A stretch of 63,047 nt of DNA, the filler included, from Reticulomyxa filosa (lineage: Eukaryota > Protista > Foraminifera), in NCBI GenBank assembly GCA_000512085.1. It is 9 parts of 9 records of this genome, joined end to end, with 100 filler letters (N's around TTAATTAATTAA, not from the genome) between each part and the next. Parts side by side here need not be neighbours in the genome. Positions count along the whole stretch, not along the records: positions 1 to 22,247 come from ASPP01000586.1; 8 more parts are not named here. One strand, written 5' to 3'. A program made the translations under genes and the position numbers. The notes under the pieces are model-generated. The model ran no database searches. It was not told the origin of the DNA and saw only the letters and a list, made by a program, of their open reading frames with translations. Below are positions 301 through 22,247 of the stretch, piece after piece. Every line of letters starts with the position of its first letter. The stretch's first letter is position 1.

Positions 301-1841
301 ATGACAATGAATGAAGATGCATTCATGAAGAAAAAAGTATATCAAGTCAAATGTGCAACAAGCAAAGAATTATTATCATACTGATGCTACCAAGAAAAAA
401 GATTAAATTGCGACTACCAATATGCAAGCAGATCTATGACCAGTAGGTCTATTGGTATTCCCAGAATAATACCAAACATTAGAACAAAACTTTCATCAGC
501 ACATCTGTTTATTTGCAAGAAATATTCACAAAGAAGAATATTATAATTTAAAAAAAAATTCATTTAAACATATAAACAATTTTTGTCTTCAACAAACGAA
601 AACAGAAACAAAGACAAAGAAAACAAACTTTTCAAACTAATAAGAAAATTTTTTTTATCGTAGATGTTTATACTAGTTGAAAATTTCATATCTGATCTTG
701 CGATATTTCGTAAAATCATATAGCGGACAACGAGTATACCAAGCGAAATTTCTGAAAACAGCTATTGAAACAGAATAGAAAGACCAAACAAAGTTTGCAA
801 GCAAAAAATTGAGTAACTTTCCATTGAATAATTGCAATTAAACATTCACACACAATTGATTATTTTAAGTATTAAATTTTAATTTTTGTTTTAGTTTTTT
901 CTAATTTGTTAAAAGAAGCGAATTTAATATCAATATTTTATGAGACTTCGACAATTCGAAAACAAGAGTCAAATTGTTTTCACAACCGTTGATTGATCGC
1001 AACATTTAATTTTTGAAATTTACTTTGCTCTTTTGATATTTTAAATTTAATTAAGACTTTAAATTGATATTTTTGCTTGTTGTGTTAATTGTGAGTGAGT
1101 TTTAACAATTTTGTAGAGCTTTTCCTTTGCTTTTTGTTTTTATTTTAGTACTGTGTTCCTTTTGGGATGAGGTGCTCTTTAACTAGGAAAAAAAAAATTA
1201 TAATTTCTAGTATCTTTACGTTCATCGGATTGATCTGGAGTATTATTCGAATCAAAAGAAACCGTTGTTATTCTGCAGTTTCTATTGAAACTTGCAGTGC
1301 AAGCAACTCAATATTCAGCATCATTGATCAGTAATTGAAGAACAGATAATGTGGAATTAGATACAATCATTTCCCAATATCTTCACCACGAATTAAACGA
1401 TAAAAGATCAAAATTCTTTGGACAAAGCAGTCGAATCTTAGACTAAATGTGTTATTGAAGCTGGAGAAGCGACAATTTAAGTCGGTTCAAAGCATTGAAT
1501 ACCAATAAGGTATGTATTATTCTAGTATTGATGAACAAAGAGGTAAATTCAGTGGCGATCATTGGCAAACACTTTAGTGAAGGAACAAAAATGTCCCATG
1601 GCGGCATGGCAAAAATAAAAGTTCATTAACATGCGAGGATGCGAAGGCATCCGCTCCTTCTGCTCCGAGCGCGATAAGGCCATCAAGCAACGATCAAACT
1701 CAAACAAGTGGTTAAAACAAAAACAGCTCCTTAGAAACTCAGTCCGAAAAAAACAAAACGGACGAAAAGAATAGTCAAAAAAAAATTAAGATGCTTCAAC
1801 TTGTTGATTTTTGTTTTGCTTTGAGTCGACAATTTACCATT

Positions 1842-2400
1842 CTATGAGATATTGTTCAAATAAGTCTTTGGTTTCCAAATCTTGTATGCCAACACAAGAT
1901 TATGACCATTGAATCGACCTGTCCATCTGACGCACTTGTGGTATAACTTCACCTTTTCTTTCCTTCGTTGTAATTCAAGAGGGAGTTGTGAAATAACATT
2001 GACTGTGTCATAAGCAGTCTGGTTCATTAAACCAAAAATTCGACAATCCTTTGTATCCTTTCCAATATTATCTTATGAGTCTACTTCACCATTCCAAAAT
2101 GCAGATGCATACTCTAGACTCGGACGAATAATTGCTTATATAATAGATTATATTTGGATAAACTTTCATATGTGTTATGCCACTATTGGAATCCTGCTTG
2201 TGTTTGATGTAATAATTACTTATCATTCAACCACTACATGAATCCCCTTGTGATGATCATTTCCATTAATTTACTAACGCTTGATAACAATGCGATCGGC
2301 CTTGATCCTTGCACTGACTATGGAGACAAATGTATCATAGTCTCAATAACTTCTTCTTTTGTAATATCACTCCCATCAATAAAATCATCGCTCAATTCCA
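1842..2400 (-). mobile_element. Degenerate LINE reverse-transcriptase fragments (minus strand, internally deleted)
   Basis: Manual minus-strand translation gives ITKEEVIETMIHLSP, RPIALLSSVSKLMEMII, QAGFQ (RT N-terminal motifs) and IRPSLEYASAFWNG (post-RT region), with stops and frameshifts. Confidence 0.75.
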
Positions 2401-2469
2401 ATAGTTTAGATATCTTCAATCATTTCATAATATTTTACATCCACATCTTTTGGATGCTGATAATGTTCT

Positions 2470-2712
2470 GTAGATGTCTTTTTTTTAAATAGAAAGAATG
2501 TTATAAGTTGAATTCACAGAAGAAAATATTGCAAAACAAGCACTTGAATACAGTACTAAGTATTACAATATGTTACAAAAGTAACCAACAAACAGCATTC
2601 TAGCTTCAACTTTGCAGCTATAGCTTTAATTTAAAAATTGTTTGAATGAAAATCATCTATCTCATTGTAAAAAGGTTTCAATTTATTCTTCAAACTTTTG
2701 TTATCATCACTC
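2470..2712. repeat. Diverged direct repeat, copy 1 (copy 2 at about 4200-4462)
   Basis: Collinear shared blocks: aaaatattg, caagcac, ttgaa.acagtactaa, tacaata.gttacaaaa, gtaaccaacaaa, cttcaac, atcatcac. Confidence 0.7.
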
Positions 2713-2729
2713 GGTTGATTGCCTTTGTC

Positions 2730-3760
2730 TCACAGGATTATTCCTGTTATACATTAATGACATTGTGTATTCAGTTCAAGATTCAATTCAATGTTGGATG
2801 TTTGCAGATGATGTTGCATTGCGGACATCTATTTACACAAGAAGGGATTAAAGTTGTAAAGGGAAACACTATCAAGAGTATACATTTATGCTTTGAAGTT
2901 GGTTTTCCGAGATACAGCCTGATCAATATCCACATCAAGGCAAATTGCCAATACAGATTGCAAGGCTTTCATATTCCAGCAAATCGCCTTTCGAGAAATG
3001 AAAGGGGTTAACATCAGATATTAAACGTTTGATGAAGATAGAAGTTGCAAACCTGATCCAAGACTTGGAGGAGCAGTATTTGTCATTCAAGTTCCGTCTC
3101 AATCACAATAGATCGAATTGGAGTTCCCAATCAAAGGAATCACAACAATAATTGTCAGTGAAATAGACAAGCATTGGAAAAAATTCAATTCCAGTACAAA
3201 GATGAAAGAGTTATTCTATATTTGCTTTGAATGCAATTCACAACAAATACAACTCGGAAACTTATAATTTTCCAATTGCAGAATGCCAAAGATTGATTAA
3301 AGGACTTGGAGGAAATTGTGTTCCTGAGATTTATTGGATCAAAGGACACTCCGGAATTTCTATAAATAAAAGAGCAGACGCAGTGACAAAGTTAGTAAGA
3401 TTCCAAGCAGAATAGATAAATCGGCACCATTTCTGAATTTCCATGAATTGAATCCGTTTTTCACAGAAGAATAGAATCGATATTGGGCAAATGAAATGGA
3501 ACCACACAATGTCCCAAACGATATTTACGCAATCTGATTGAAGCACAATCATTCGAAAAGATTGCTTTGCATCGATTTGAAGTATAAGCGCAGAGATGTT
3601 TGCATGGCAAGCAGCAGTCAAGAATTTGTTGCCTCAATTTCAATTCAACATATCAAACCTGAGAAATTTGGTTATTGGAGACAAGATATGTGAACATGAA
3701 ACAATGACAAAAATTGTCAAAGAACTTGCGAAGTTAATCGTTGCAACTGGAAGAATTATT
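2730..3760 (+). mobile_element. Degenerate LINE ORF2: RT catalytic motif plus RNase H fragment
   Basis: LFLLYINDIVYSVQDSIQCWMFADDVAL (FADD motif) in ORF 2642-2851; YWIKGHSGISINKRADAVTK (RNase H WVxGHxGxxGNExAD-like) in ORF 3227-3415; ends ELAKLIVATGR. Confidence 0.8.
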
Positions 3761-4199
3761 TAAAAATAAATTTTTCAACTAAATAAAACTATTTCAAAAA
3801 ACATCTATTTTGTTATTTGGTTTTATATTTATACTTTTCTTTTGTATCATTTAGTGCCATGTCCTATTTTGGACCAGGTGCTTTTTCAATTTGCTTTGCA
3901 CTTTGTGACATTAACAAAATGAACAAATAATGTCCGGAAATTTCCATAAAATTTATGCATTACTACTTTTCTAAACAACACACTTTTATTTCTCAATCCA
4001 AGTAACTGAAAAACTGATTTAAATTTTTGTGACAACAATCGTTGGCGTATTCGTACACAAGAATTGTCTTGTGACACATTCAATGTTATTTCCCAAATTC
4101 CCCCTCTTAAATTACAACGAATACAAGAAGATGTGATATTTGCCACAATAGCTGGAGTTATAATATACAATCAAGAGCATTATAACAAACATTGATCAT

Positions 4200-4462
4200 A
4201 GACTTTTTTTTAATTGAAGAATGTAATTGTTAAATTGACAAAAAGGCAAAATATTGTAAAGCAAGCACCTCACTCAAACTTGAACACAGTACTAAATAAT
4301 ACAATACGTTACAAAAAAGTAACCAACAAATAATATTCAAACTTCAACATTGAAGCAATAATTTTATTTTAGAATTTGTTTAGAGGAAAATAGAGAATGT
4401 ATCCTTTTATATCACTTCAAAATGATCTCAATTTAACCCATAAAACTTTTTGATCATCACAC
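4200..4462. repeat. Diverged direct repeat, copy 2
   Basis: Same collinear blocks as 2470-2712, with small insertions. Confidence 0.7.
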
Positions 4463-4979
4463 AGTAGCATTGCTCCCCTTTGTGCAGATCAGGTGGAATC
4501 CAAGGGTCCCTTTGGGACTCAGACTCTACGAGACTTCAGCAAACAGTGAAGTCATATTCTTCGAATGTTAAATATCAATCAAATTAAAATAAAAAAATTC
4601 AACATTCTCAGTTATCACCTTACAAAACTATATCACTCAAAAAACAAATCAAAACAAACATAAAAACTGTTGAAGCATTTTATTTTTTTAGTTTCCGTCT
4701 TTTGTTGCCTTTTCATTAACCTCTTGGCCTTTGTGGACCTTTTCGTTGGTTTACTGTCCTGGCTCGTAGCCTTATGCTTTTATCGTGTTTTTGGTACATA
4801 GTCCGAAAACATTTGTTAATGAGATACCTAATCTCGATTGAAAGATATATTTTGGTATTTTTACTAATCCCTTTCGCTTCGTCATTTGCTCATGTTGGCT
4901 TTTTTAGTTATCTAATGATTACGAAGGTCATATGAATTTTTTTATCATATACTTAATCAATAATTAATCATTAAATATC

Positions 4980-5700
4980 TTATTGTTGAATGTTGATTAT
5001 TCTAACTTATTGCAAGTTCGTGATTAATTCTATATTCAACAAATAGTATTCCAACATATATAAATCACCAATTGTCAGAAAATTTTGATATTACTTAATG
5101 TTCTATATATTGTATTAAATGTCATTATGTGATACCTTTAAATGATAAAGTTTATCTTGTTGCAAATAATTCTCGCAAGAAAGCACATCAATTGCAACTA
5201 GATTTGATTCAATAACATAATATTCAACAGCATACACAAAATTTGTAGTTAATTGGACACTTGAATTTGTTTACCAGATCGAATATCCTACAAACGAATA
5301 CTTTTATCTCTAAATCCAGATAATATTATATTTGCACCATTAATTCCTAATTTATTTGTTCCATTTTATACTAATAATTAAATTTTTTCGTCCTTTAAAT
5401 AAAACTAATTGTTTAGTTGTTTCAATATCACATGTACTAGTTCCATCAAATGATCCAGAACAATTTGTATATCCACTGCCAGCAATCAAATCAATATTGT
5501 TACTTTGCAGCGTTGAAATATCCAACATACAATGCAACATTCATGTCCATTGGAATCATGTAATGATTTGGATGTTTTAGTATCACATAAACGAACAGTT
5601 TTGTCCAATGATAAAGGACAAATAACATTACGGTAATTATTATAATAATGATATTGTGAAAATTCACAAAATACACAGATGAACGAAATACTTCAAGCAT
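4980..5700 (-). pseudogene. WD40-repeat protein pseudogene (expanded family)
   Basis: LIAGSGYTNCSGSFDGTSTCDIETTKQLVLFKG and KLGINGANIILSGFRDKSIRL*DIRSGKQIQV; the conserved W of WD is replaced by a stop, plus frameshifts. Confidence 0.8.
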
Positions 5701-6052
5701 AAAAACTGTAGTGGCCTATGTTACATGTGATAATGAATAACATGCAAAATGGAAAATAGGCTAACATTTGTTTAATTTGGCGGCACTCTAAACGCATACC
5801 GACGCGCAAAAAAGAAAAAAAACACTTGGAAAATACAGCACAACAAACAGAAAAGCAAAAAAAGAACACATGGGCTTAGAAATAATGCCAAGATTACAAC
5901 GCAACCAACGACCAAGTCATATTGCAAACGCAAAATAGCTAATGAGAAGAACGAGAGAGGAGCATGAATGTACTCTTTTTGCCTCTCCCCTTTTTCTCTT
6001 TGTTCTTTGTAAAATCATTTCCTCAATGTTTGGAAAGACGGAGTCAGTATTT

Positions 6053-7595
6053 TTAGAAAGAACCCAAAAGAGAACTCCATTGCAACGCAAGTCGAAAGCC
6101 TGATCCTAAATCAGGTTGCAAAAGATCTTGATGAAAAGGATCAAACTTGCATTTTTCCAAGGTGTTTAAAAAGCGTTGCGCAGCGATTGATAATAGCAAA
6201 ATCGATTTGACTTTGCTATCAAGTTCGTTTTTTATATCCCTCGCCGCAAACAAATGTGCATACGCTTTTTCAGTCAAATCTTCGACTGCAGATCTCAACG
6301 CATCACTGCATTGCCCTTTTAAGATTGTTTCTTCATCTTTCCACACGCTGTATTTGTTCGCCACATCGTCTGGTAGCTTTGTTTTGCGTTATGCGCACAT
6401 GCACATACGTGTTCCAGAAGGGGAAAAGGAAAAAAAAGGGTGAGAAAGGGTGATGAGTGAAGTGAAAACAGAAAAAAAAAGAATAAACTGCAATAAAACC
6501 ATTAGCAGCAGCAAAAGGTATGGATTTCAAAAGTATGGCAAACTGCATAAAGGCCGCGATGTGCGACACTGCAGTAAAGTGTTTGTTAAGTGTATCATCG
6601 CCGTCTCCACTGCTAGCATTGCCATTGCTATTGCTATTGCTATTGCGATTGGGAACACAGCCCAATATTTGCATGGCCAAATATAGTAACACGGCCTGAG
6701 TGTTTTCGGCGTATTCCTCCATGTCCGAGATGGTGGCAAAAGTGTTACTCTGTAGAAACAGGTCACGACCAGAGACGAGACGCAATAGCCATTGGCCGTT
6801 CAAATGGTAGCGATGGCGGACCACGCGAAGTGCGACGAGAACGGGTGTGTCGGGGATGTGCTTTTGATATGCCGTGTTTTGCAACATCGCTTCACGACGC
6901 TCTTTCTCCTCATTCGCCAAATCGCTAACGGCGGAGAGCCACCAGTGCAATCGCATTTTCGCCGCGTCCGTGCCCTTGGCCTCGCTGCGAACACGTGACA
7001 ATTCCAAGTTGAAAGCGCGGGTTACTATCACGCCCAGTTTCTGCGTCTCATTGCATTTCAAGTGTTGCAACGCCAAAAAGGTTTGTGGTTCTTGTTTTCT
7101 GTTTTTGTTTTTGTTTTAGCTTTGTTATCATTGTTTATTGTTGAGTTGTTTTTTTTTAATCCCCCTTTTTTTTAACTTTACTTCTTCGATGCAATATTCA
7201 AAAGCCCTTTTGACTTGATCTTCCTTCTCCTTGGACAGAGGCTGTCGCACTCTTTTTTCTGAGTCTGGATTTTGTCTTGCTGTTGTGGAGGTCTTTCCTT
7301 GGCTTGGATTTTGTGGTGAAGTGCGCTCGCTTCCTTGCTGTGCTTGTTTGTGCGCGTCTTGTGGCGTGTTTGGTGCTGATGGAGATTGAGACTCGGTGAA
7401 GCAACGGCGCTGATAATTATTGCCGTACCTGTCCTTAGATTGATTTGAGTGGGCAAAGCTCACACTGCTTAAAGGATTTTGTTTGGGGCCTGTCTTTACT
7501 CCATTCACATTCACATGATACCGAATCGATGAGCATCTCAGTCGAACACTCGCCTCTCGACCTGCCCAATGCTTAAACATCAAGCATTGTTTCAT
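6053..7595 (-). CDS. NDUFAF6: Mitochondrial complex I assembly factor 6 (squalene/phytoene synthase-like fold), about 3 exons
   Basis: AFEYCIEEV, RAFNLELSRVR, KMRLHWW, PVLVAL, FATISDMEEYAENTQAVLLYL, FLNTLEKCKFDPF; basic transit-like N-terminus; introns at about 7100-7177 and 6395-6490. Confidence 0.85.
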
Positions 7596-8029
7596 TATTT
7601 CAACTCTCCAATTAGACGTTATTCGTATGCTGCCACTTTTACTGAAAATATCAATGGCCGTTCAATGGCCGATGTATAATTGGAGATAAAACTTTTTTCA
7701 ACTTTCCATTTCATTTCAAGAAGAAATACCAAATCATATCTTGATAGAGTATATTTATTTTGAAACAATTGCAATGCTTTTTACGCGTTCATTTATTGAT
7801 AACAATGATTATTTTCTCATGCACTTGTCAAAAGTCCACTCTATTTACTGTTTTTCCGTTTCTTTAGCTCCATTTATTCCTTCTTTTCTGCAATACTTTT
7901 AGAAGTTTGCACATTGAAAAGGATTCACTTTTCGATGGTTGCAATTTGTTCAACCAAAAAAAACACTGCTTCATTGTAAAAAGAGGGCAATCAAATAATG
8001 CCTCAATTGATTAAAAAAGCAAATAAATA

Positions 8030-10964
8030 TCAATCGTGCAATTTTGTTTTTGATTTTTCTATTCTGTACTTTTTTTGATCCCTTTCCCTTTCCCGACTTC
8101 TGCTGTGGCTACGTTTCTTTTCTTGTTGAAACCTGCTTCCATTGCGACTGCTTGTGCGGTGGTATTTGCCTTTGTTGCGAGAAGTAGATCTGGAGGATGA
8201 GGTTGACCTTGATTTGCTTTTTGATCGTTTTGTTTTTTTGAATTTATGCTCTTTTTTGTTACGATAGTCCTTATTGGATGAGCGTGACGAGGATGAAGAT
8301 TTACTGCTGTGTCGCATTCGTTCCCGACTACGACTGCGACCTTTGTGTCTATAACTTTCAGTATTTTTTTCTTTGGAGACATTTCTCTCATTACTTCTGT
8401 CATCTCGATGTCGTGATCTGCTGCGATCACGTCTCTTTTTGCTAATGCTGCTGTTGCTCCTGCTCCGGCCTCTGCAGGATGTGAGATTGTCCCCGTTGCC
8501 TTTTGTGGAAATGAGAGATTTGTCGCGTTTGCCTGTCTGTGTGGGCGACGAGTCATCCTTTTTAACACCATTTTTGGATCTCCTCTGTCCCTTCCTGTCT
8601 TGTTCGTTGTGTTTATTGGCTTCACTTGAGATCGAACGCGACCGAGACGTGGACCGCCTCGATTTGCGACTTTCGTTATCGTCTTTGTTTTCGTTTTTCA
8701 GCATCTGTGATCCAACAAACATACTTGTTCGAATGGATGCACATCACTCCAAGCCAAGTGAGACAGACACAGTTTAACTTTGAATTTGATTTGAAGTTTG
8801 ACAATTTTCCATAGATAATACAAGTGATAAGGATTGTCCGAGTCCAAAAACGCCATGTCTTTGTTGTGTTGGTTATAGGTTTTGATCTATTGTTCGTCAC
8901 AACATTATTCCGCGTGTTGTGCTCACGACTATTGCCACAGTTATGTTTGTGGCATCGCCCTCTCTCCCTCTCCCCTTTTGGTAGTTCCAAACAAAACAGT
9001 TACGCAACTACTTGCTCGTAGTCTTTGCCAGACTTGACCACATTTTCCGCTGTTTCTTCGATCAGCGCAACAATCTGTTATTTGTTTCATTTGCATTATT
9101 ATTATTATTAATGTGGATTGCTATTTCAATTAAAAAAAAAAAAAAACAGACAAATAACAACAGCGTTTCATGTAACGTACGTGAGAAGCAGGCCTTTCTC
9201 CTTGAAATGATCCGTCGCTGTTGGTATCTGCATCTTCTTCCTGTTTGGATTTGTCTTGAAGTGGCTTGAAGAAATCATTGGTGGTTTCGACGGTGGGATG
9301 TTTGAATGTGCTGTTGGGCGAAAACCCAGGTGGCTTGGAAGGAATTGTCGCTTCTGTTTCTGGCCCGCTTTCATCATCCGAATTGTAGATCGCTAGCGCT
9401 GCCAATGCCGACTTTGTGTCGTTTGCAGTATCCGATGGCTTTGTTGTTTTCTTTCTCGTCTCCTCACTCTCCACTTTTTGGGTGGGCTATTTACCAATTT
9501 GATGCAAGTATGTTTGTGTGCGGTGGGCTCGAATGTGTGACACCAACTCTCATTTAAAAAACACATAAACAAATAAATAAAAAAACAATCAAACTAAACT
9601 CACGACGCAAACATATGATTCCAAAAAACAAGAAAGGGGACAATAGAATAGCACACAAAGTGAATTGTTTGGACAAGCAAGCAAACATTCAAAATCATGA
9701 CACCCACACAATGAATGAACCCCCGCCCCCCTCCTCTCCTTCTCTTTCATAACACCAACAACAATTAAAAAGGTGATGCACGGAACACAACGTCGATAAA
9801 ACAACGACAATAACATGTGACCACCCTTTTCTTTTTATCTTGTCTTTTCTTTTCTGTTCTTTCTCACCCTTTGTCTCTCTCTCTCCCTTCCCTTGGCAAT
9901 GTAAAGAAGAGGGGATAGTGAAGCCATACCATTTGTGTTAATCTCTTTTTGAGAAAAGTGTAATAAGGATATAATTGATCCATTGGATCCATAAAATTGA
10001 ATTCTGCATTGTTTGCCTATGTATCACAACGCCCACAAACAAACACACAAACATGCTTCTCAACAGTACTGACTTAACAAAAAAAATAAATAATAACAAT
10101 AATAACAGCATTTTTTGAACGTGTCACAAAAAAAAGATTAGAGAGAAATGGCAAAAGTTGAGAGAAAAGGGGGGAAGAAGGAGGGAAGAAAAATAAAAAA
10201 ATTTAAAAAAAAGTTCATTTGCCATATGATCGACAAGTTTAACTTATTATCAATACATTACTTATTATTATGCCAAAAGAGCCTAGGAATTGACTATGTG
10301 GTTTTTAATACGTATACACATATATGCTGTATTTTGGACGGCCTTTGTGCTCGTATGTTACCCTTTTATTTGTCGTACCTGTTTGATTTGAGCATAATTT
10401 CAAATTGTAATCCTTTTTCGTGGACCCATTTGGCCGTTTTTTCAATCAGTTGATGTTTTGCCAACGTAGGTGGCTGTGATTGTTCATTGCCATCAAAGAA
10501 AAAAATTGGTTGGTTGTTTAATTCATGTAAATACGCGCACATACAAAAAAAAAAAAAAGAAAATCTGCTGTGCTAACCACCGGAATTGTTGGCAGTACAT
10601 AAAAAGGGGGGCAAAATGGCTGGGTCTGAGAATGTTCGTTCTTGCTGGGCAAAACGAAGCCTGGCGGGAGATCTTTGTGTATAAAGTTTTGGGTTGGGAC
10701 ATCAAAGTGCAAATACGTTGAATTCGAGAGCGAGGACGTGGGAACACTACAAACAAAAATCAACTTACTAGGCTCAGGATTATGATTTTTTTGAGTATAC
10801 TCTTGTTCTAGTGCATCCAACTCTGCTAAGAGTTTTGATTCTTCTTCTTCAAGTGAAAGCATTAGCATATATTCGAAAGGAACCACTCTTTTTTTTTTTG
10901 CATTAAGGTTCTGTTCAACTGGTGTTACAAAATCCTTTTTGTTCTGTTTTCTAGTTCGGTACAT
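8030..10964 (-). CDS. SFSWAP: Suppressor-of-white-apricot-like splicing factor: two SURP domains plus RS-rich C-terminus, multi-exon
   Basis: Manually spliced SURP1 PPTLAKHQLIEKTAKWVHEKGLQFEIMLKS / ANNAEFNFMDPMDQLYPYYTFLK (about 10490-9935); SURP2 IVALIEETAENVVKSGKDYEQVV / MAFLDSDNPYHLYYLWKI (about 9075-8790); RS-dipeptide tail in ORF 8030-8722. These exons are too short for the ORF track. Confidence 0.75.
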
Positions 10965-11164
10965 TATCTTGAGGAAAAAACGATAAACTACTTTGAAGTT
11001 TGCTTATACTTCAAACGTGAAATCATAACTTCACTGAGGCTACCCTGTTTCATTTTACTCAGTAACAGTGTGGGGCTTCCCAAAAGATCAAACCAGATTT
11101 TTTTTAAAGAAAAGCAGCACTCTGAAATTTTGTCTTAATATTATCAAATAAAGCCACATACAAA

Positions 11165-12989
11165 ATGTCGCGATTTTCCAGTTATTTTTGGAAATTTCGG
11201 TGGAGGGCACCGATAATGCAACGGCCCAGAATTTTCCAACAAATGACTGCAGACACGACCGAAAGCATTGCAGAGCGCTCTTTTCAATCGAAGACCGTTC
11301 CAGGGATGGAAGCCTCAGCGCTGTTTCCGCCACTAAACGGTCGATCGAATGCATTCAAATTTGCAGGTTATTCATTTGGAACAATTCTGTTGATCGTATT
11401 GGGACCCATTGTATTGTGGCCAGTTGCAGACGTGTATATACTGCCTTGGGTGTTATGCAAATCTCTGGAAAGAACACCAAAACATAAGACGCAAATTTGG
11501 GGTCGGGAACATGAGATCGAGCAGATATCGGAAATGCGAAAGAGACCAGCAAACAACGTAAGCTTTTTTTTTTTGTGTGCATACACGTACATGCCTGTGT
11601 GCATACACGTACATGCATATCTGCTAACCTATCGCTGCAAAGACAAGATTTGGGTGAATGTTTTTTGCAAACAGATTTGGATTTTGTCAGGCGTGACAAA
11701 TTCAGGCAAAACAGCATTGTTGCAAAAAATGGAAAGCGACAAGCACGGGATAATATATATTGACTTGCGTCATTTTTTCGATGGCAACGCCTTTGTGTTT
11801 GAAATGATTGACGCGCTGTACAATGAAAAGAAGACGGGTGGAATCGGCCGTTTCGTAGGCACATACGTGAAGTTGTTCACATTTGTCACGTCGTTAATGG
11901 CGCAGTCGGACCAGCAGATCACGGCCATGCTGTATTTCCACGCCATGTTGAACCACTTGCGCGCAGGTATCCGTCGGTATAACTCCAAGTACGGACTGCT
12001 GCCATCATTGTCGTCTCGAGTTACAGATACGCACTCCGATGGACTTCCTTTGATCGTCTTCGACCACTTTGAAGCCCTGGGCGAGGCGTACAATCGTTGT
12101 GACAGCTCCAAGAATCGTGAAATGCTCTCTTTCATCATGTACAGTCTTGGCCAGTTTGCCACCAGTCTGTGTCACGATCAAGGCCTCGCTCACGTCCTCT
12201 TTGTTGGAGATGAACTCTTCACCATTAACAAGGAGGCCAGAGGATTTCAACTGCACGAACAGAGGGCATTTAATCCCACCGAACACTTACAGAGCTTCCT
12301 AAAATATTTATCGAGTGACTCCAGTGACGGTATACATATATATATACATATATATATGTATACGTATATACTTAAATATATGTATACATATACATATGTG
12401 ATTAGAACATGCGCATTCGTCATTACCTGTTCTGAACCAGCATTGCGAGTATTGGAGTATCAGCGGTGTGGATCACAAGTCGGCGGTAAATGCTATGCTA
12501 TCGATGTGGCAATCGACATTTGGATGGGATCAACAGAACAAAGAAAAGTACGAGTGTCTGGTAAGCAATGCCAATAAACTAATTCGTGCCCTCGGCACCA
12601 AGCCTGTGAATATCGACAATTGTGTTCGCACCATTGCAAAGTACTTTATGCAGATTGACGCCAAAGAGCGAAGCATTTTGCGTTTCAATGGCATCGTCGA
12701 CGATTTTATCTCGAAACACGAACAAGCACAACATAGCAAGCTGTGGCCGCTAAAGTCCAATGCCCAGGCTTTTTTCAAGTCTTTGAAAAAAGATCGCAAG
12801 ATGGACTGGAGTACTGCTGTCACAAAGTACTTTCCTGAGGATAAAGATCTGTCGCTGTTGCTGCACTTGATTCGAAATGGCGTAATCCATCGTGTCCACG
12901 GCACAAACTTGGCACGAACCGATGATGAATTGCGTCAACGCTTGTTGCACGGCACAGATAGTGTCGTATATTTGGAAGCAACTGCATGA
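11165..12989 (+). CDS. Membrane-anchored P-loop ATPase (archaeal-ATPase/Yme2-RNA12-like), probably mitochondrial, 3 exons
   Basis: Arg-rich N-terminus, TM segment GTILLIVLGPIVLWPVA, Walker A GVTNSGKT, Walker B-like PLIVFDHFE, LAHVLFV; introns 11558-11674 and about 12330-12406. Confidence 0.65.
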
Positions 12990-13499
12990 ACCCTGACGGA
13001 ACGCCGTAATTTGTGAATTTTGCTATGTGGCAAAGAGAAGGCAGTTCAACTGCGCTTTGCTTTTTAAATGTGTAATAAGTATCCCTCCCTCTTGATTGTC
13101 GTCAATCCACTTTTTGTAACATCTTGCTAGCTCTAAAATGTGCACACTTTCTTTCTTAAAAAAAGATTGTTGGTTTTAAATTGCAATGATAGTGTGTACC
13201 TATTTGTGACAAACTTTTTTTTAAAAGTAATAAAATTTTTGGAGTGGACAACAAGATTCGTTTTTAAAAACGCTGTAAATCCCAATGACAAACTTATATC
13301 GCAAAAAACTTATCATAATAACTTTGAGAACGACATTGAAACGGATTTACTTGGGTTCCAAAAACACTGGAAGAGGGACAGTCCAAAAATCGAAAACAGC
13401 AAAATTTTTTTTTGAGGAAAAAAATAATAGATTACCTAAATCTGGTGATATTTTTGCTTTATCTTGTACTGTTAAATTGGAAGACTTGTTTAACGCACT

Positions 13500-15462
13500 A
13501 TGTCGCTTGTGACAATGCCATCGGACCCAATGTTTTTGATGGAGAAGAAGAGCAGTGAAAAGGGAAAAGGAAATACATTGAATGAGGTAAGCGAAGGAAA
13601 CGAGGAAATGACAAAGGACGAAGGAGAGAAAGAGACGATAAATGGGAGCAAGACAATGGAAGAGTGGTTGCAGCAGGAGAGTCTGATCGTGCATCCAGTG
13701 TGGATCGGGAATCTGCCAGCGCACACAAACGTGAAATCGCTACGAGACTTTATCGAATCGAAGATCGGCCAGGTGTTGGTGTCGTTGCATGTGAGTGACA
13801 ACGGGAGCAACAGCAACGACCGCAAATACGCATTTCTGAACCTGCCGTTTGCAGAGAAGCAGATGTTAGCGGCGACATTGTTGGACGGACAAATATTTAA
13901 CGACGAAAAGTGATTGTGAGACCGAAGCGAAGTTCCAAGTTCCCGCAGTCGTTCTTTGGGAGTTCGCCGATCAATGCATACTTTAAACAGTTTCGAGACA
14001 ACGTAGCCCCGCAGATCTTTAGCAATCCAGCGCTGTTGAACCTGCAAAGTGTGCGACAATCGTTGAAGGACAACAACATATCGATTGAGCACCTGCCCAA
14101 TCGCATGTGGTGTGTGCATTGCACGTTGGCACCTCATTGTCATCGATCGTATTGCTCGTTCTATCATAAGCCGCACGAGAAGGAGTTGGGACGAATCCTT
14201 TCGCTGCTCGCCGCCGAGCACTACGAAAGCAAGCATAGCGCTGCGCCTCTCAACGGCGTCGACTACCAGGGCACCAATACCCGAGGCATGCACAGCCATC
14301 ACACGTTGCTCGTACAAGGCCTGCCCAAACACATCACGTCCAACAAGATCCAAAAGTGGTTCGAGGTGTTTGGCGATATCGATCACATCAGCGTGCAAAC
14401 CAATCTCACGTATCTGCGCATGAAGCGAGCACAGGACGCTACCAAAATTGTGCATCTGCTCAAAGGGAACAATGCCAAGATACTCATCTCCTTTGCCCCA
14501 CAGTTGAGAGCACTCGGATATGTTTGAGTATTTTAATTCCTTCTTTTTTTTTGCTTATTTGTTTGTCTATATGTATGTGTGTGTGTATGTAATTTGTGCT
14601 GTGAATTAGTGGCTCACAAGGAGAATCTCAGCCACAGATCCAGTCCTCGGATGAATATTCCACAAAGAACAAAGACGAGGATGTCATGGATTCCTCGTCG
14701 ATGCATAAAAAGCCCTTTCGAACCAATAAAAAACGCAAATATCACAAAACGGAAACAATGAATGGAGAGTGGAACATAAATGGCGGGGATGTGGGCACTA
14801 GCAAAGTCAATTCCAATGTCACGCTCACTTCCAATATCAAAGCAAATGTCAACTCGCTGCCTAATTTGAATATCGTCGCTCTGTCCAACTCCACTATCAA
14901 GTCAATGCCCATTTCCATGCCTTTTCAAACTATCTCTCCTATTACTGCTATTCCCTCGGGTCAATCCATTGCATTTCCTTGGCAACTTATCCCGACGCAA
15001 GTCTTTCCTGTATTGTCAAATGCTTCGCCTACTTACATCTACTCGGATCACACCACGCCCATCCAAACCACACATCCGACTTCCAACTACATGTTCACTC
15101 AGACCACACCAAGCTATTGCTTTACTCCTCCGGAAAATAGTCAGTTTATTTCCACTCCCAATTTCATTCATGGACTACACAGTCCCTTGTCGCCTTTTGA
15201 TGTAGTAAACACCCCTCTTACCGCAATTCCAATGGCCACTCCCCTTCTCACGGGGCTGACAACCAGAAACATCAATACAAATACGGCTGCCAATTCCAAT
15301 TATATCCACACCCCTATCTTGAATATGCAACGTGAACTGTCACCAAAAAAGTTGAACGAACAACAACCACTTTTCCCTAAATTGCCTTTCATTTCCATGA
15401 CTGATACTCCACTCACTCCTATGGAGCAATTGTTATTGCCTGGCAACACCTCTCATGACTGA
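13500..15462 (+). CDS. RNA-binding protein with two RRMs, a CCCH-like finger and a P/S/T-rich tail; apparent 1-nt frameshift at about 13906-13910
   Basis: RNP2 VWIGNLP, RNP1-like KYAFLNL, second RRM LLVQGLP...FEVFGDI; CTLAPHCHRSYCSFYH; intron about 14519-14609. Confidence 0.7.
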
Positions 15463-18207: not shown

Positions 18208-18998
18208 TTCTTATGAAGTATTAAAAAAAAGTTTGAATATAAAACCCTTTTTACCCACTTCGTTTAGCGGCTAAAAAAGTCAAAATTATTCGATTCACCA
18301 ACAATACGTTTATTTGAACATTATGTCTCACAACTGATTGTTCAATAACTTTATCTACTCCGCACACATTCTTGAATTTCCGACAGGTTGGTACAGAACA
18401 AACATTTGAACTAAACAAAAGAAGACACTTTAAAAAAAGTAATGTTGTTTTGAATAGATTGATACTGATATATTACAAAAACTGTGTGAGGCAGAATCAT
18501 AATGAACTCTGTCATTTGACGTAAAAGTTCTATTGTTTTACTATTTAGATTTCATTTTACATTCTCACTCTAATTTCTAAGACTCTATCTAAGTACTAGT
18601 TTCCCTACATTGAATTGGATAAAAATACCTCAAAAACTCCTTTTACAGAAAAAGAACAATAATTTGTTTACTCCATAAAAAATTCTTTGTCCGACAATTA
18701 TCAGAAAACTATAGCAACAATTTTTGGCCAAAAAAAGGATTGATTTATTGATGAATAAAATGAAATTGAATTTAATACAGCGCCAGAATTATTGCGATGC
18801 ATTTTGATTACTTAGTGCGAGAGAATGAAAAAATTTACAAATATCTTTGTTTTGAGATAACTCTCAAAGAAATATTTGCAGTAGGTAATCTTTTGTTCAC
18901 TGCGACAGGAAACTCAATAAAACCAGAGTTTGAGCCGTCACTTCTGTGCATTATTATTTTTGCTACCATTTCAGTTAGAACAATTATATTTGCACGAA

Positions 18999-19232
18999 AT
19001 GGGCTGCTGTTTTGGCTTTGACCATCATCACCGTCACCATGGACATCACGATTACCACGAACACCACCCTCCCCAACAAACGTACGTTGTTGGTCCTGGT
19101 TATGTCCCGACTGCTAATCAACCAACCATAGTTGCCGCGTATCCACATCAGCAGTACACTACCTTTGGCCATCATGACCACCATCATGACCATCATGATC
19201 ACCATCATGACCATCATTACGACCACCACTAG
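18999..19232 (+). CDS. Small (77 aa) His-rich peptide with MGCC N-terminus (predicted myristoylation and palmitoylation)
   Basis: ATG at 18999: MGCCFGFDHHHRHHGHHDYHEHHPPQQTYVVGPGY...HHDHHHDHHDHHHDHHYDHH; GC-richer than flanks; mixed CAT/CAC codons. Confidence 0.7.
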   Translation: MGCCFGFDHHHRHHGHHDYHEHHPPQQTYVVGPGYVPTANQPTIVAAYPHQQYTTFGHHDHHHDHHDHHHDHHYDHH

Positions 19233-19703: not shown

Positions 19704-21523
19704 TCAATCAGAATTGTTGAATGGTTTCAACAGCGATACGACGTCCTCTGTTTTTCCTAAGCGACGGGCCATTTCGAAAGGTGTCTCTTCGAGCTTTAAA
19801 AAAACAAGTAAACATATAGGTAACACACGAGTAAATAAGAAAACAAAAAACACAATACCAATGATTTGTCTTCATCTCCAACAGCTCATTCCAGACTTTT
19901 GGAGGCATTTTCATTCGCAACGCCTTCAAACTATTCGATTCATTTTTTCTTTATTCAGTAAACTTAAGTGAATCATATTCATTCCTCGTAAGTCATCGAT
20001 TTCATTCTTTCATCACAATCAACAAAGTGTTTCAAAAAAAAATATATATATAAATATGTGTATGCACGTATTGTATAAAATTACATTGGCAAGCAATTTC
20101 CAAAATGTGGTATCTACGTTCTTTGGAATCAGCAAGGAAAGAATATTTTCGTCCATTTCAGGAGATCGAAAGAGTCCGTCCATTAACGGAGATTGTCCGT
20201 GCTATAGCATCAAATAAAGCAAAAATTTTTTTTGTTATCGTTGTTGTTTTCCCTCTCCATCTCTTTTTTTTCTCTCATAAAAAAAAACCAACTCTGAACA
20301 GTATCCGTGGAAATAGTCAATCTTTCCCACGATTGCTGCGGCACATATTTGCTGAGCAATTGCAAACGAGCCCACACATTCGGTAAGGATTTGAAAAACA
20401 CAAAATGCAGCAAGTTTCTCTCGGCCTGTATTTGTGTTGCAACCCCCCCATCATCATCATTTCATTTGATTCTGTTTCTCAAGCCAAAGTAAGACAGCAG
20501 GAAAAAAAGGAACATACACCTACACACACAACCTAACTCCACGACTCGAGGCCTTGAGTTCCCAAAACGAGTAGTTTTCTTTGTAATTAATGGGAATAAG
20601 TGACTCGATGGCAAATTCGCTGAGTTCGGGTTGACAGTTTATTGCGCTTATCAACGGAGTGCCTCTTTGCTATGTCATTTATTATTGAATAATAAATAAC
20701 AAAAACGCTAATCTTTACATATATATGTATAATAGTGTGTGCATGTAGATAAAATTAAACTCGTTTATCGCAGGTTTGAATAAGCGTCTGCCATCTATCT
20801 TCGTCTCGAATATTGTCTTTCAATAACTTCAACATGAGTAACAAATTCACCCGGATGTTTCGAACTCCAAACTCGATGCAAGAATGATCATCCTAAAGGA
20901 GGAAAAAAGATGAAAGAAGTCCAAGAGGAAAAGAGAAATAAAGATAACCTCGTCTAATTTGTTCCACAACTCTCTGGCTTGGTCAGGGTCGATTGGGACA
21001 AAGAGTTGAATACATGGGATAGACGACTGTTTCCACAGGGCTAACATCAAGGGATAGACACCGATGAGATCGGGACGCATCAATTGGGTTTGGACGATAT
21101 CGCGAGGGATGAACATATTACTGTGCAAGAGCGCCTTGGCATAACCGAACTTGACTTGAGAGCTGTTGGCCATTTGGATCATAAAGTTGCCTCCGCCAAA
21201 GTCGAGTGATTCACGAATAAACGAGGACGACGCAAATTGTCTGGGGAAAAACAGCATCAGATTGGCCATGTCAAAGGCATAAAACGAGGCGATCTGTAAT
21301 TGAATGTCAAACGACAGCTCCTGGATCACTTTGAACGTGTCCGTCATGAACGAGTGTTGGCGTGCGAGTTCATAGAAGGGATGTGCCTTGAGTTTGAAGT
21401 TGGACATTGTCTTTAGCAGAAATTGCACTTCTGTTACAATGCTTTGGTTGTTGTTCATAAACAATATGTTCATTTTCACATCTTTGTATTCTTTTGGAAT
21501 TGGGATTGGAATTGCATCCGTCA

Positions 21524-21554
<31 letters not shown>

Positions 21555-22206
21555 GTTGTTGATACTCGTGCCACTCTCAAAGAAGCCATTCTTGAAACGT
21601 ACCACTTTAAACTTCTTTGTTTGTTGAGGGGTAGGAGGAGACGACATGACGTGGAGAAAGTGATTCAAGCCATACACCAACTGGGACACATTGGTAAAGG
21701 TGACCTGACAACGGATAATGTCAATGATATGAGCTGACTTGGGATAGCGCTCGTGCTTGTAATCCACTTGGGCTTTCAGCTTGCATCGATCGTGGGTTTT
21801 GATAGGTCCTTCCTCGAAGGTGCAGCCCTGGCAATCTTTGAAGATGCTGCGCATTTCCGTTTGGAAGGTCTCGTTCATCGAGTGCGCACGGGTCAATAGC
21901 TCGTGCAGGTAAATGTCAAAGTCGTACACGTGTTTGGGATGGAATAAAATATCTGCGCTGTTGATCTGAATCGATAGGAGCTCCTTTTCTGTCAGCTTGC
22001 TCCGCACTCCCCATTCGTGATCGTCCTGTCGGCACTTGGAGTTGGTCGTTTTCATCTCTTTGTCTTTCCACTCCAAACACATCAGCTGCTTATATTCGTC
22101 TTTGTACTTTTCAATCTCCACTCGCATTTCCTCTTGAAAATTTTCCATTGTCCGAAGCGATTCGCTGTCTGATATCGCTTTGATTTTATTCCATTGAATT
22201 GATGGT

Positions 22207-22247
<41 letters not shown>
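19704..22247 (-). CDS. RelA/SpoT synthetase-like nucleotidyltransferase domain fused to C-terminal ankyrin-like repeats; multi-exon, 5' end lost in linker
   Basis: GPIKTHDRCKLK, IIDIIRCQVTF, VVRFKNGF, EYKDVKMNI, TEVQFLL, AHPFYE in synthetase motif order; downstream GVYPLMLAL, GTPLISAI, GMNMIHLSL, ETPFEMARRLGKTEDVVSLL; frame stays open into the (AAT)n at the contig end. Confidence 0.7.

Follow-up and report, generated by a model that had tools for sequence, protein, structure and literature searches.

Does a heterotrophic protist carry in its own nuclear genome a RelA/SpoT homologue (RSH) synthetase, and if so, what would such a domain do when it is joined to repeats? The question is raised by a gene on the minus strand (19704-22247) of a 63,047-nucleotide stretch of DNA from the foraminifer Reticulomyxa filosa (assembly GCA_000512085.1), called the window here. 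An original prediction had proposed that this gene encodes a RelA/SpoT-synthetase-like domain fused to ankyrin-like repeats. RSH enzymes hold a central place in the stress signalling of bacteria and, in the form of toxic small alarmone synthetases (toxSAS), CapRel and Tas1, in their conflicts. To our knowledge, eukaryotic RSHs have been characterised almost only in plastids, and in fungal NOD-like receptors (NLRs) they are known by annotation. Our analysis points to a diverged gene of the RSH synthetase fold with ankyrin-like repeats, which belongs to a set of at least about 60 paralogous loci in R. filosa, and we lean towards regarding its product as a Mg-dependent enzyme.

The putative RelA/SpoT-synthetase-like nucleotidyltransferase domain occupies positions 21294..21941, or residues 70-285 when numbering starts from the ATG at 22148; all positions given for this gene are on the minus strand. 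The six motifs that had been predicted can all be read, in the proposed order, in the minus-strand open reading frame (ORF) 20847..22148, which begins at that ATG and also contains a run of 11 Asn. The first is a Syn1-like basic motif, GPIKTHDRCKLK (21774..21809), with the pattern G-P-I-K117-x3-R121-x3-K125, which lies at the end of strand 1 and the start of a helix and aligns with GRPKHIYSIWRKM of RelA. It is followed by the Syn2-like D143-I-I-R146-C-Q (DIIRCQ; 21705..21722) at the start of strand 2, whose Asp is a candidate Mg ligand, and by the strand 3 motif R184-F-K186-N187-G-F (RFKNGF; 21582..21599). The poly-Asn run (21528..21560) falls in the loop between strands 3 and 4, which differs in length among paralogues and where the predicted local distance difference test score (pLDDT) is below 50 at residues 193-212. 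The Syn3-like motif of strand 4, Y221-K-D223-V-K225-M-N227 (YKDVKMN; 21468..21488), stands in place of G-Y-x-S-x-H, and the Syn4-like motif of strand 5, E240-V-Q242-F-L-L (21414..21431), which includes a candidate catalytic Glu, in place of E-I-Q-I-R-T. Finally, the Syn5-like helix A-H255-P-F-Y259-E-L-A-R263 (AHPFYE; 21360..21389) aligns with H..YE..R of a second R. filosa family, in which a RelA_SpoT-like stretch is linked to a NACHT NTPase.

Are these motifs housed in an RSH fold? An AlphaFold2 (AF2) model of 400 residues, built on an 11-sequence alignment, reached a pLDDT of 75, and a model of the domain (residues 70-285), built on a 41-sequence alignment, reached a pLDDT of 85.8 and a predicted template modelling score (pTM) of 0.78. 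In the models a long helix is followed by strand, helix, strand, helix, strand, loop, strand, strand and a second long helix; they show the helix and five-stranded mixed sheet of the RSH fold, with RSH proteins as nearest neighbours. When both were compared with the PDB by Foldseek, a check that the original prediction had proposed, the top 50 matches were all RelA/SpoT-family synthetases (best E values 1.3e-4 and 3.5e-6), with RelP, RelQ, an exported Streptomyces small alarmone synthetase (SAS), Rel, RelA, SpoT, CapRel and Tas1 among them. RSH chains came first in every structure search, about 3 Z units above the remaining chains, and in the ESM Atlas a RelA_SpoT cluster was found both among the nearest shapes and among the nearest features. 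The two structure predictions and the three structure searches agree with the fold that had been proposed, and the core domain very probably adopts the RelA/SpoT synthetase fold.

The points that weigh against this reading begin with the sequence searches, since no sequence method ties the window family directly to RSH. Pfam, NCBIfam and PADLOC gave no relevant match for the window protein, for which PF04607 (RelA_SpoT) was absent even at E ≤ 10, so that its gathering score was not reached; nor was PF04607 among the families reported for 54 scanned relatives (11 close and 43 distant). Searches of the PDB sequences with phmmer and with two family profiles returned no RSH chain (matches to an EED insert and to pantoate ligase were discarded as poly-Asn low-complexity artefacts). 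For profile comparisons we used a bacterial RSH profile made from E. coli RelA and 45 long and small RSHs of 30 Pseudomonadota genomes; a locus search with the E. coli RelA domain had given Enterobacteriaceae only, and diverse RSHs were hence drawn from genome searches. Direct alignment of the window family with this profile by hhalign was not significant (E 0.66). The window family did align with the NACHT-linked RelA_SpoT-like family of R. filosa (E 8.8e-4), and that family with the bacterial RSH profile (probability 77%, E 2e-5). A profile in which both families were merged was colinear with bacterial RSH over Syn1-Syn5, but at an E value of 0.09. The window-family profile found no match in the PF04607-positive R. 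filosa loci, and the two foraminiferal families are therefore distinct at the profile-sequence level.

What is this second family? A PF04607 search of the R. filosa assembly gave 93 matches, about 91 of them scoring 18-32 bits, with 13 above the cut-off and many in long open frames. The RelA_SpoT-NACHT loci number about 90. In all four that were scanned for NACHT, the NACHT NTPase follows the RelA_SpoT-like stretch at a distance of about 300 residues, and the one full ORF scanned (L171, 1700-6370 on the minus strand, 1557 amino acids) has a RelA_SpoT-like stretch, then NACHT, then 12 WD40 repeats. The RelA_SpoT-NACHT-WD40/ANK architecture has been listed for fungal NLRs (Dyrka et al. 2014, PMC4986451), so that non-plastid eukaryotic RelA_SpoT domains are not a new category as such, and RelA-type domains are among the effectors reported from conflict systems of prokaryotes (PMC7159879). 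The tripartite RelA_SpoT-NACHT-WD40 architecture was not reported for Foraminifera in the literature that we searched.

Both foraminiferal families, and not bacterial RSHs, have K-x3-R-x3-K followed by ..DY, D-x-x-R, and H..YE..R. These common derived features suggest that the window and NACHT-linked families had a common origin, with domain shuffling between NACHT-gated and ankyrin-flanked architectures. On the negative side, no NACHT, NB-ARC or other NTPase of the STAND class (signal transduction ATPases with numerous domains) was found in the window protein or in the scanned members of its family, including those with complete N-termini, nor was any other recognised sensor module found in the sequenced part of the gene; the NTPase that marks NLR/STAND receptors is present only in the separate NACHT-linked family. 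Two strong HD_4 plus RelA_SpoT matches in the same assembly, on contigs of 885 and 492 bp (G000:C8583 and G000:C32270), were considered as a canonical RSH of the host and rejected. These contigs have 61-65% GC, compared with 29-39% in the foraminiferal loci, match long bacterial Rel proteins and are probably bacterial contaminants.

Could a domain so far from bacterial RSHs still be an enzyme? In the 41-sequence domain alignment, whose members are 26-61% identical to the window protein, K125, D143 and N187 are invariant. Conservation is at least 90% for K117, R121, Y130, P136, R146, R184, K186, F189, D223, K225, N227, E240 and L245, as well as for three columns of the N-terminal helix (Y80, L81 and F95). 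Among 43 more distant members, Q242, H255, Y259 and R263 are nearly invariant, and every family-invariant residue is present in the window copy. Conservation across the family thus extends to the residues found where RSHs have their ATP-phosphate clamp (K117, R121 and K125), Mg-binding Asp (D143), acceptor-stacking Tyr (Y221) and catalytic Glu-x-Gln (E240 and Q242). Because most of the invariant or at least 90% conserved columns fall inside the motifs, these are not chance occurrences.

In the profile alignments, G-P-I-K117-x3-R121-x3-K125 corresponds to G-R-P-K-x3-S-x3-K of RelA (Syn1), D143 to FDIGRF of the NACHT-linked family and to the Asp of FDVRAVRI in RelA (Syn2), and Y221-K-D223-V-K225 to Y-Q-S-I-H of RelA, with Y221 on the Tyr of GYQSIH (Syn3). 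Likewise, E240-V-Q242 corresponds to EMQ in the NACHT-linked family and to EIQ in RelA (Syn4), and H255..Y259 to the H..YK region of RelA (Syn5). The secondary structure agrees: the Lys-rich motif falls at the junction of strand 1 and the helix, strand 2 opens with the Asp, and strand 5 has the Glu in its middle. The original prediction had both catalytic acids retained, and in these individually weak profile-profile alignments the invariant D143 and the at least 90% conserved E240 do fall on the bacterial Asp and Glu. They are well-supported candidates for the catalytic residues; all the equivalences come from weak profile alignments and the order of secondary structure, and this again has to be set on the negative side. 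A Pfam scan of the sequenced part revealed neither an HD nor a TGS domain, as had been foreseen.

Canonical RSHs have G-R-x-K-x3-S-x3-K as Syn1, G-Y-x-S-x-H as Syn3 and E-I-Q-I-R-T as Syn4. In the window protein the K-x3-R-x3-K spacing of the Syn1 clamp is retained, with the first Arg replaced by Pro and the Ser by Arg. The acceptor loop of Syn3, also expected to be altered, reads E-Y-K-D-V-K, in which the Tyr alone is retained, the Ser is replaced by Asp and the His by Lys, and D223, K225 and N227 are conserved instead. Together with the Gly of DxxGxR and the Arg-Thr of Syn4, which have also changed, the loss of the first Arg of Syn1 and of the Ser and His of Syn3 counts against an RSH activity and could mean other chemistry or mere nucleotide binding. 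The latter would apply to an RSH-fold pseudoenzyme serving as a nucleotide-binding or structural scaffold for ankyrin-mediated complexes, an account that draws on the replaced Syn1, Syn3 and Syn4 residues, on the complete lack of a Pfam RelA_SpoT match and on the precedent of inactive nucleotide-generating domains in prokaryotic conflict systems (PMC7159879). We consider it unlikely, as K117, R121, K125, D143 and E240, at the positions of metal and phosphate ligands, are kept across the 41 sequences despite their divergence, and the replacements R121, D223, K225 and N227 are themselves conserved and polar or charged, which fits a re-tuned pocket better than decay.

Other chemistry would mean an active enzyme of the nucleotidyltransferase fold that transfers, for example, a nucleoside monophosphate to RNA or protein in the manner of MenT, TUTases or CD-NTases. 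The donor clamp, altered relative to RSH, would suit such an enzyme. However, the lead of RSH chains in every structure search is difficult to reconcile with it, the RSH arrangement of a single Asp opening strand 2 and Glu-x-Gln on strand 5 is present, and our alignments contain no trace of G[GS]...DxD, the signature that defines classical Pol-beta nucleotidyltransferases. We rate this possibility as less likely still than a pseudoenzyme. On balance, the conserved residues incline us to think that the domain is catalytically competent.

How widespread is the family? In its own genome we found 70 matches on about 60 contigs, which is a lower bound, and when 1.84 billion cluster representatives were searched with a family profile, at least 1132 proteins were returned at E ≤ 1e-3, 198 of them at E ≤ 1e-30; many of the 1132 are 800-1900 residues long. 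Names could be attached to 13 of the 20 members looked up, and all 13 are from Foraminifera (Reticulomyxa, Nonionella, Elphidium and Bolivina). So far, the family appears to be restricted to Foraminifera and to lie beyond the reach of standard domain databases, and neither foraminiferal RSH-like family was mentioned in the literature searched. A TARA Oceans metagenome scaffold of marine plankton (L170), perhaps from a planktonic rhizarian or perhaps from another organism, carries an intron-free member of 1642 amino acids (1075-6003) which adjoins an ankyrin gene of more than 2238 amino acids (6666-12003). We also observed a paralogue locus in R. filosa (G000:C12816, L003), 51% identical to the window protein, in which the domain match is interrupted by four in-frame TGA codons. 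This locus may be a pseudogene or may hold unrecognised introns.

Is the gene of the window itself intact? Positions 1-22247 are one entire contig (ASPP01000586.1) of an assembly of 101.9 Mb in 50,809 contigs. We found six exons separated by five GT..AG introns of 56, 91, 336, 137 and 58 nt, with a lower G+C in introns than in exons for four of the five, and the exons sum to 1866 nt, that is 621 codons and a stop in a single frame. Exon 1 (20949..22247; 433 codons, open at the contig edge, with its GT donor at 20948) contains a coiled-coil/RQD segment, the RSH-like domain and the first ankyrin-like repeats. After intron 1 (20893..20948), exon 2 (20761..20892; 44 codons) is kept in nine paralogue loci, with E values down to 7e-16, and in annotated paralogues. 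Intron 2 (20670..20760) precedes exon 3 (20538..20669; 44 codons), in which a 'G-TPL..A' ankyrin-like repeat is found and which is kept in eight paralogue loci. Intron 3 (20202..20537) has a possible alternative donor 5 nt downstream. Exon 4 (20068..20201; 134 nt) harbors a second ankyrin-like repeat, 'G-SPL..', and matches paralogues at E values down to 2e-14; its long form is preferred because paralogue conservation continues beyond ..FWK..N-V. Intron 4 (19931..20067), exon 5 (19852..19930; 79 nt, kept in five paralogue loci) and intron 5 (19794..19851) are followed by exon 6 (19704..19793), which has 29 codons and a TGA stop (19706-19704), the last ankyrin-like unit ('ETPFEMA..G') and counterparts in seven paralogue loci. 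The splice points placed with least certainty are the donors of introns 3 and 4. In up to nine paralogous R. filosa loci the five downstream exons, which were compared singly, all recur in unchanged order, with E values down to 7e-16.

The introns, the 621-codon frame and the paralogues in the same genome bear out the proposal that this is a native spliced nuclear gene. An ORF from the ATG at 22148 does exist, but this ATG is not the true start. The frame remains open past it up to the contig edge at 22247, and in tblastn searches with paralogues homology reaches upstream of it to 22202; the N-terminus of the gene has therefore been cut off by the assembly. Complete paralogues have about 230-270 extra N-terminal residues. 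The contig terminus (22199-22247) is an (AAT)n microsatellite that contributes 13 Asn codons to the reading frame, and an assembly break in this repeat probably hides the N-terminal exons. The closest protein matches of the window protein are all 'RFI_' proteins of R. filosa (38-54% identity), and the gene studied is absent from the deposited R. filosa protein set. From its structure, we take it to be an intact nuclear R. filosa gene whose 5′ end appears to have been lost through assembly only.

A decaying paralogue, or an assembly or annotation artefact, with no function of its own might be suspected from the location at a contig end, the missing N-terminus, the absence among the deposited proteins (the best match there being 53% identical) and the four in-frame TGA codons in at least one paralogue locus. 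A search for sequencing runs also listed no RNA run for the R. filosa locus, which speaks for such a view and against ours. Nevertheless, exon 1 is open over 433 codons, five more exons follow whose GT..AG boundaries are intact and whose frame is consistent, all family-invariant residues are retained, and the truncation falls in the (AAT)n run that ends the contig, where an assembly would be likely to break. We hold decay or artefact to be very improbable.

The proposed fusion to ankyrin repeats stood for the family and not, by the measure of Pfam, for the 'TPxxxA' units of the window copy, which stay below significance. AF2 predicts short helix pairs (pLDDT 87-92) for the repeats of exon 1, at about residues 316-400 (20949..21203). 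Repeat units of about 44 residues with the pattern 'G-x-TPL/SPL-x-x-A...LIP' are found in exons 3 and 4, and related stretches in exon 1 past residue 316 and in exon 6. When searched exon by exon and over residues 284-400, the window's own repeats gave no Pfam ankyrin match at E ≤ 1, which is another point to the contrary; they appear to be degenerate, and 'ankyrin-like' is a fair description of them. The homologous region of a paralogue (P0003, residues 352-438) passes the Ank_2 cut-off with 28.6 bits against 27.3, and its equivalent of exon 3 (residues 462-486) scores 18.6 bits for Ank_3, below the cut-off of 22.3. Pfam ankyrin matches occur in 6 of 11 close relatives and in 35 of 43 sampled distant ones. 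In two Nonionella stella proteins of EukProt the RSH-like domain is surrounded by strong ankyrin arrays (Ank_2, E 1e-62 and 3e-25), and in ESM Atlas clusters of the same shape either ankyrin is found in 77% of members or TPR repeats in 99%. Ankyrin coupling is clearly real at the family level. The record of the Elphidium member bears MMETSP transcriptome labels. If, as we assume, MMETSP is a transcriptome project and the remaining foraminiferal sets of EukProt are transcriptome assemblies too, the domain-plus-ankyrin architecture would be transcribed in these relatives.

Which of the known systems would the gene resemble in its working? By analogy, it would work most like the small alarmone synthetases or the toxSAS enzymes. 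RelQ and RelP (SAS1/SAS2; PDB 5DED, 5DEC, 6FGK and 6EWZ) and the exported Streptomyces SAS (8VX3) have the same order of helix and five strands, and the window protein appears to have in common with small alarmone synthetases the Lys-rich motif at strand 1 and its helix, the Asp that opens strand 2, the Tyr of strand 4 and the Glu-x-Gln of strand 5. However, identity to them is 12-15%, without a profile-sequence match. The window protein further differs from them in its Syn1 (GPIK-x3-R-x3-K instead of GRxK-x3-S-x3-K), Syn3 (Y-K-D-V-K) and Syn4 (no Arg-Thr) and in its long, variable poly-Asn loop between strands 3 and 4, and its gene is eukaryotic, spliced and multidomain, with ankyrin-like repeats.

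Among the toxic RSHs, CapRel is a tRNA pyrophosphokinase with a covalently linked regulatory or sensor domain and Tas1 is a (p)ppApp synthetase; the acceptors of Tas1 and FaRel are adenine nucleotides, and that of CapRel is the 3′ end of tRNA. CapRel (7ZTB, 9ERV), Tas1 (6OX6) and FaRel (8PU1) thus provide a precedent for conflict effectors and for acceptors other than GDP/GTP, and the linked regulatory domain of CapRel can be likened to the repeats proposed as regulator here. Yet they are bacterial or phage-defence proteins, whereas the window gene has no known antitoxin or immunity partner and its regulator would be an ankyrin-like array.

Like the RelA_SpoT effectors of fungal NLRs (PMC4986451) and the NACHT family of R. 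filosa, the window family represents non-plastid eukaryotic RSH-type domains in expanded, variable families. The NACHT-linked family is its nearest detectable relative, with K-x3-R-x3-K, D-x-x-R, E-x-Q and H..YE..R in common, but the window family is ankyrin-flanked, shows no NACHT in its scanned members and lies wholly below Pfam detection, while the NACHT-linked family is within the 18-32 bit range of PF04607. In contrast to the long RSHs (RelA, SpoT and Rel) and the plastid RSH1-4/CRSH proteins, the window protein has no HD hydrolase, TGS, ACT or EF-hand domain and no organelle link. Since it has neither a Pfam match nor a canonical Syn3, the gene cannot be filed as an ordinary RelA_SpoT member, and we assign it to what appears to be a new branch of the RSH fold, eukaryotic and strongly diverged.

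How might such a protein act? Most likely, as far as analogy can guide us, it would be an active, repeat-regulated pyrophosphokinase-type effector or signalling enzyme. The Lys/Arg clamp at the positions of K117, R121 and K125 would hold a nucleoside triphosphate, D143 would bind Mg, the Asp/Glu pair (D143 and E240-x-Q242) would drive catalysis, and Y221 would be the acceptor-stacking Tyr. The beta,gamma-pyrophosphate would then be moved to the 3′-OH of a nucleotide or an RNA end, as in RelQ/RelP, Tas1 and CapRel. With changed donor and acceptor pockets, the acceptor, and perhaps the donor, may differ from GDP/GTP; because Syn1 and Syn3 are altered, the product need not be (p)ppGpp. More speculatively, the ankyrin-like repeats might hold or free the enzyme when a protein partner binds; the protein would then be a sensor-coupled effector, or would generate a second messenger, in a system of the conflict or immune type. 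A conflict or immune role was proposed because of the lineage-specific expansion, the divergence of the paralogues and the related RSH-like N-terminal effector in about 90 NACHT loci. Both this role and repeat gating come from architecture, expansion and analogy only, which is the last of the points to be set against our reading, and a sensor-coupled immune or conflict function is a tentative proposal that we find somewhat doubtful.

Other ORFs were observed on the same contig. The ORF at 6333-7076 on the minus strand matches Pfam SQS_PSY (squalene/phytoene synthase; E 5e-19, profile positions 19-167 of 263) and is probably one exon of a neighbouring gene. On the plus strand, an ORF of 100 amino acids (18930-19232) ends in a long His/Asp-rich run (HHDHHHDHH...) and is mirrored by a low-complexity ORF on the opposite strand. 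The region 7128-15462, where G+C is higher (0.40-0.47), contains several ORFs of 148-470 amino acids, for example 11165-12577 (plus strand), 13490-14455 (minus strand) and 14686-15462 (plus strand), with no Pfam match at E ≤ 1e-3.

What could these genes mean for Foraminifera? A large family with the predicted RSH fold, invisible to Pfam and usually fused to ankyrin repeats, is found beside about 90 RelA_SpoT-NACHT loci. A bolder proposal, by analogy, and one that we judge improbable, would be that Foraminifera run a cytosolic nucleotide-pyrophosphate system with two RSH-like families, one ankyrin-gated and the other NACHT-WD40-gated, as a protist counterpart of the toxSAS/CapRel defence. In such a system a pathogen or non-self protein would be sensed, upon which an alarmone-like messenger such as (p)ppApp, (p)ppGpp or a new pp-nucleotide would be made, or tRNA would be pyrophosphorylated, so that a portion of the giant syncytial cell would be closed down or sealed off. 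In practical terms, hundreds of 'hypothetical' foraminiferal proteins could be better annotated. If the domain is active, the family would also offer RSH enzymology a naturally re-tuned acceptor pocket, and it would raise the question of whether alarmone-type nucleotides, or the pyrophosphorylation of tRNA, serve heterotrophic protists in signalling or immunity.

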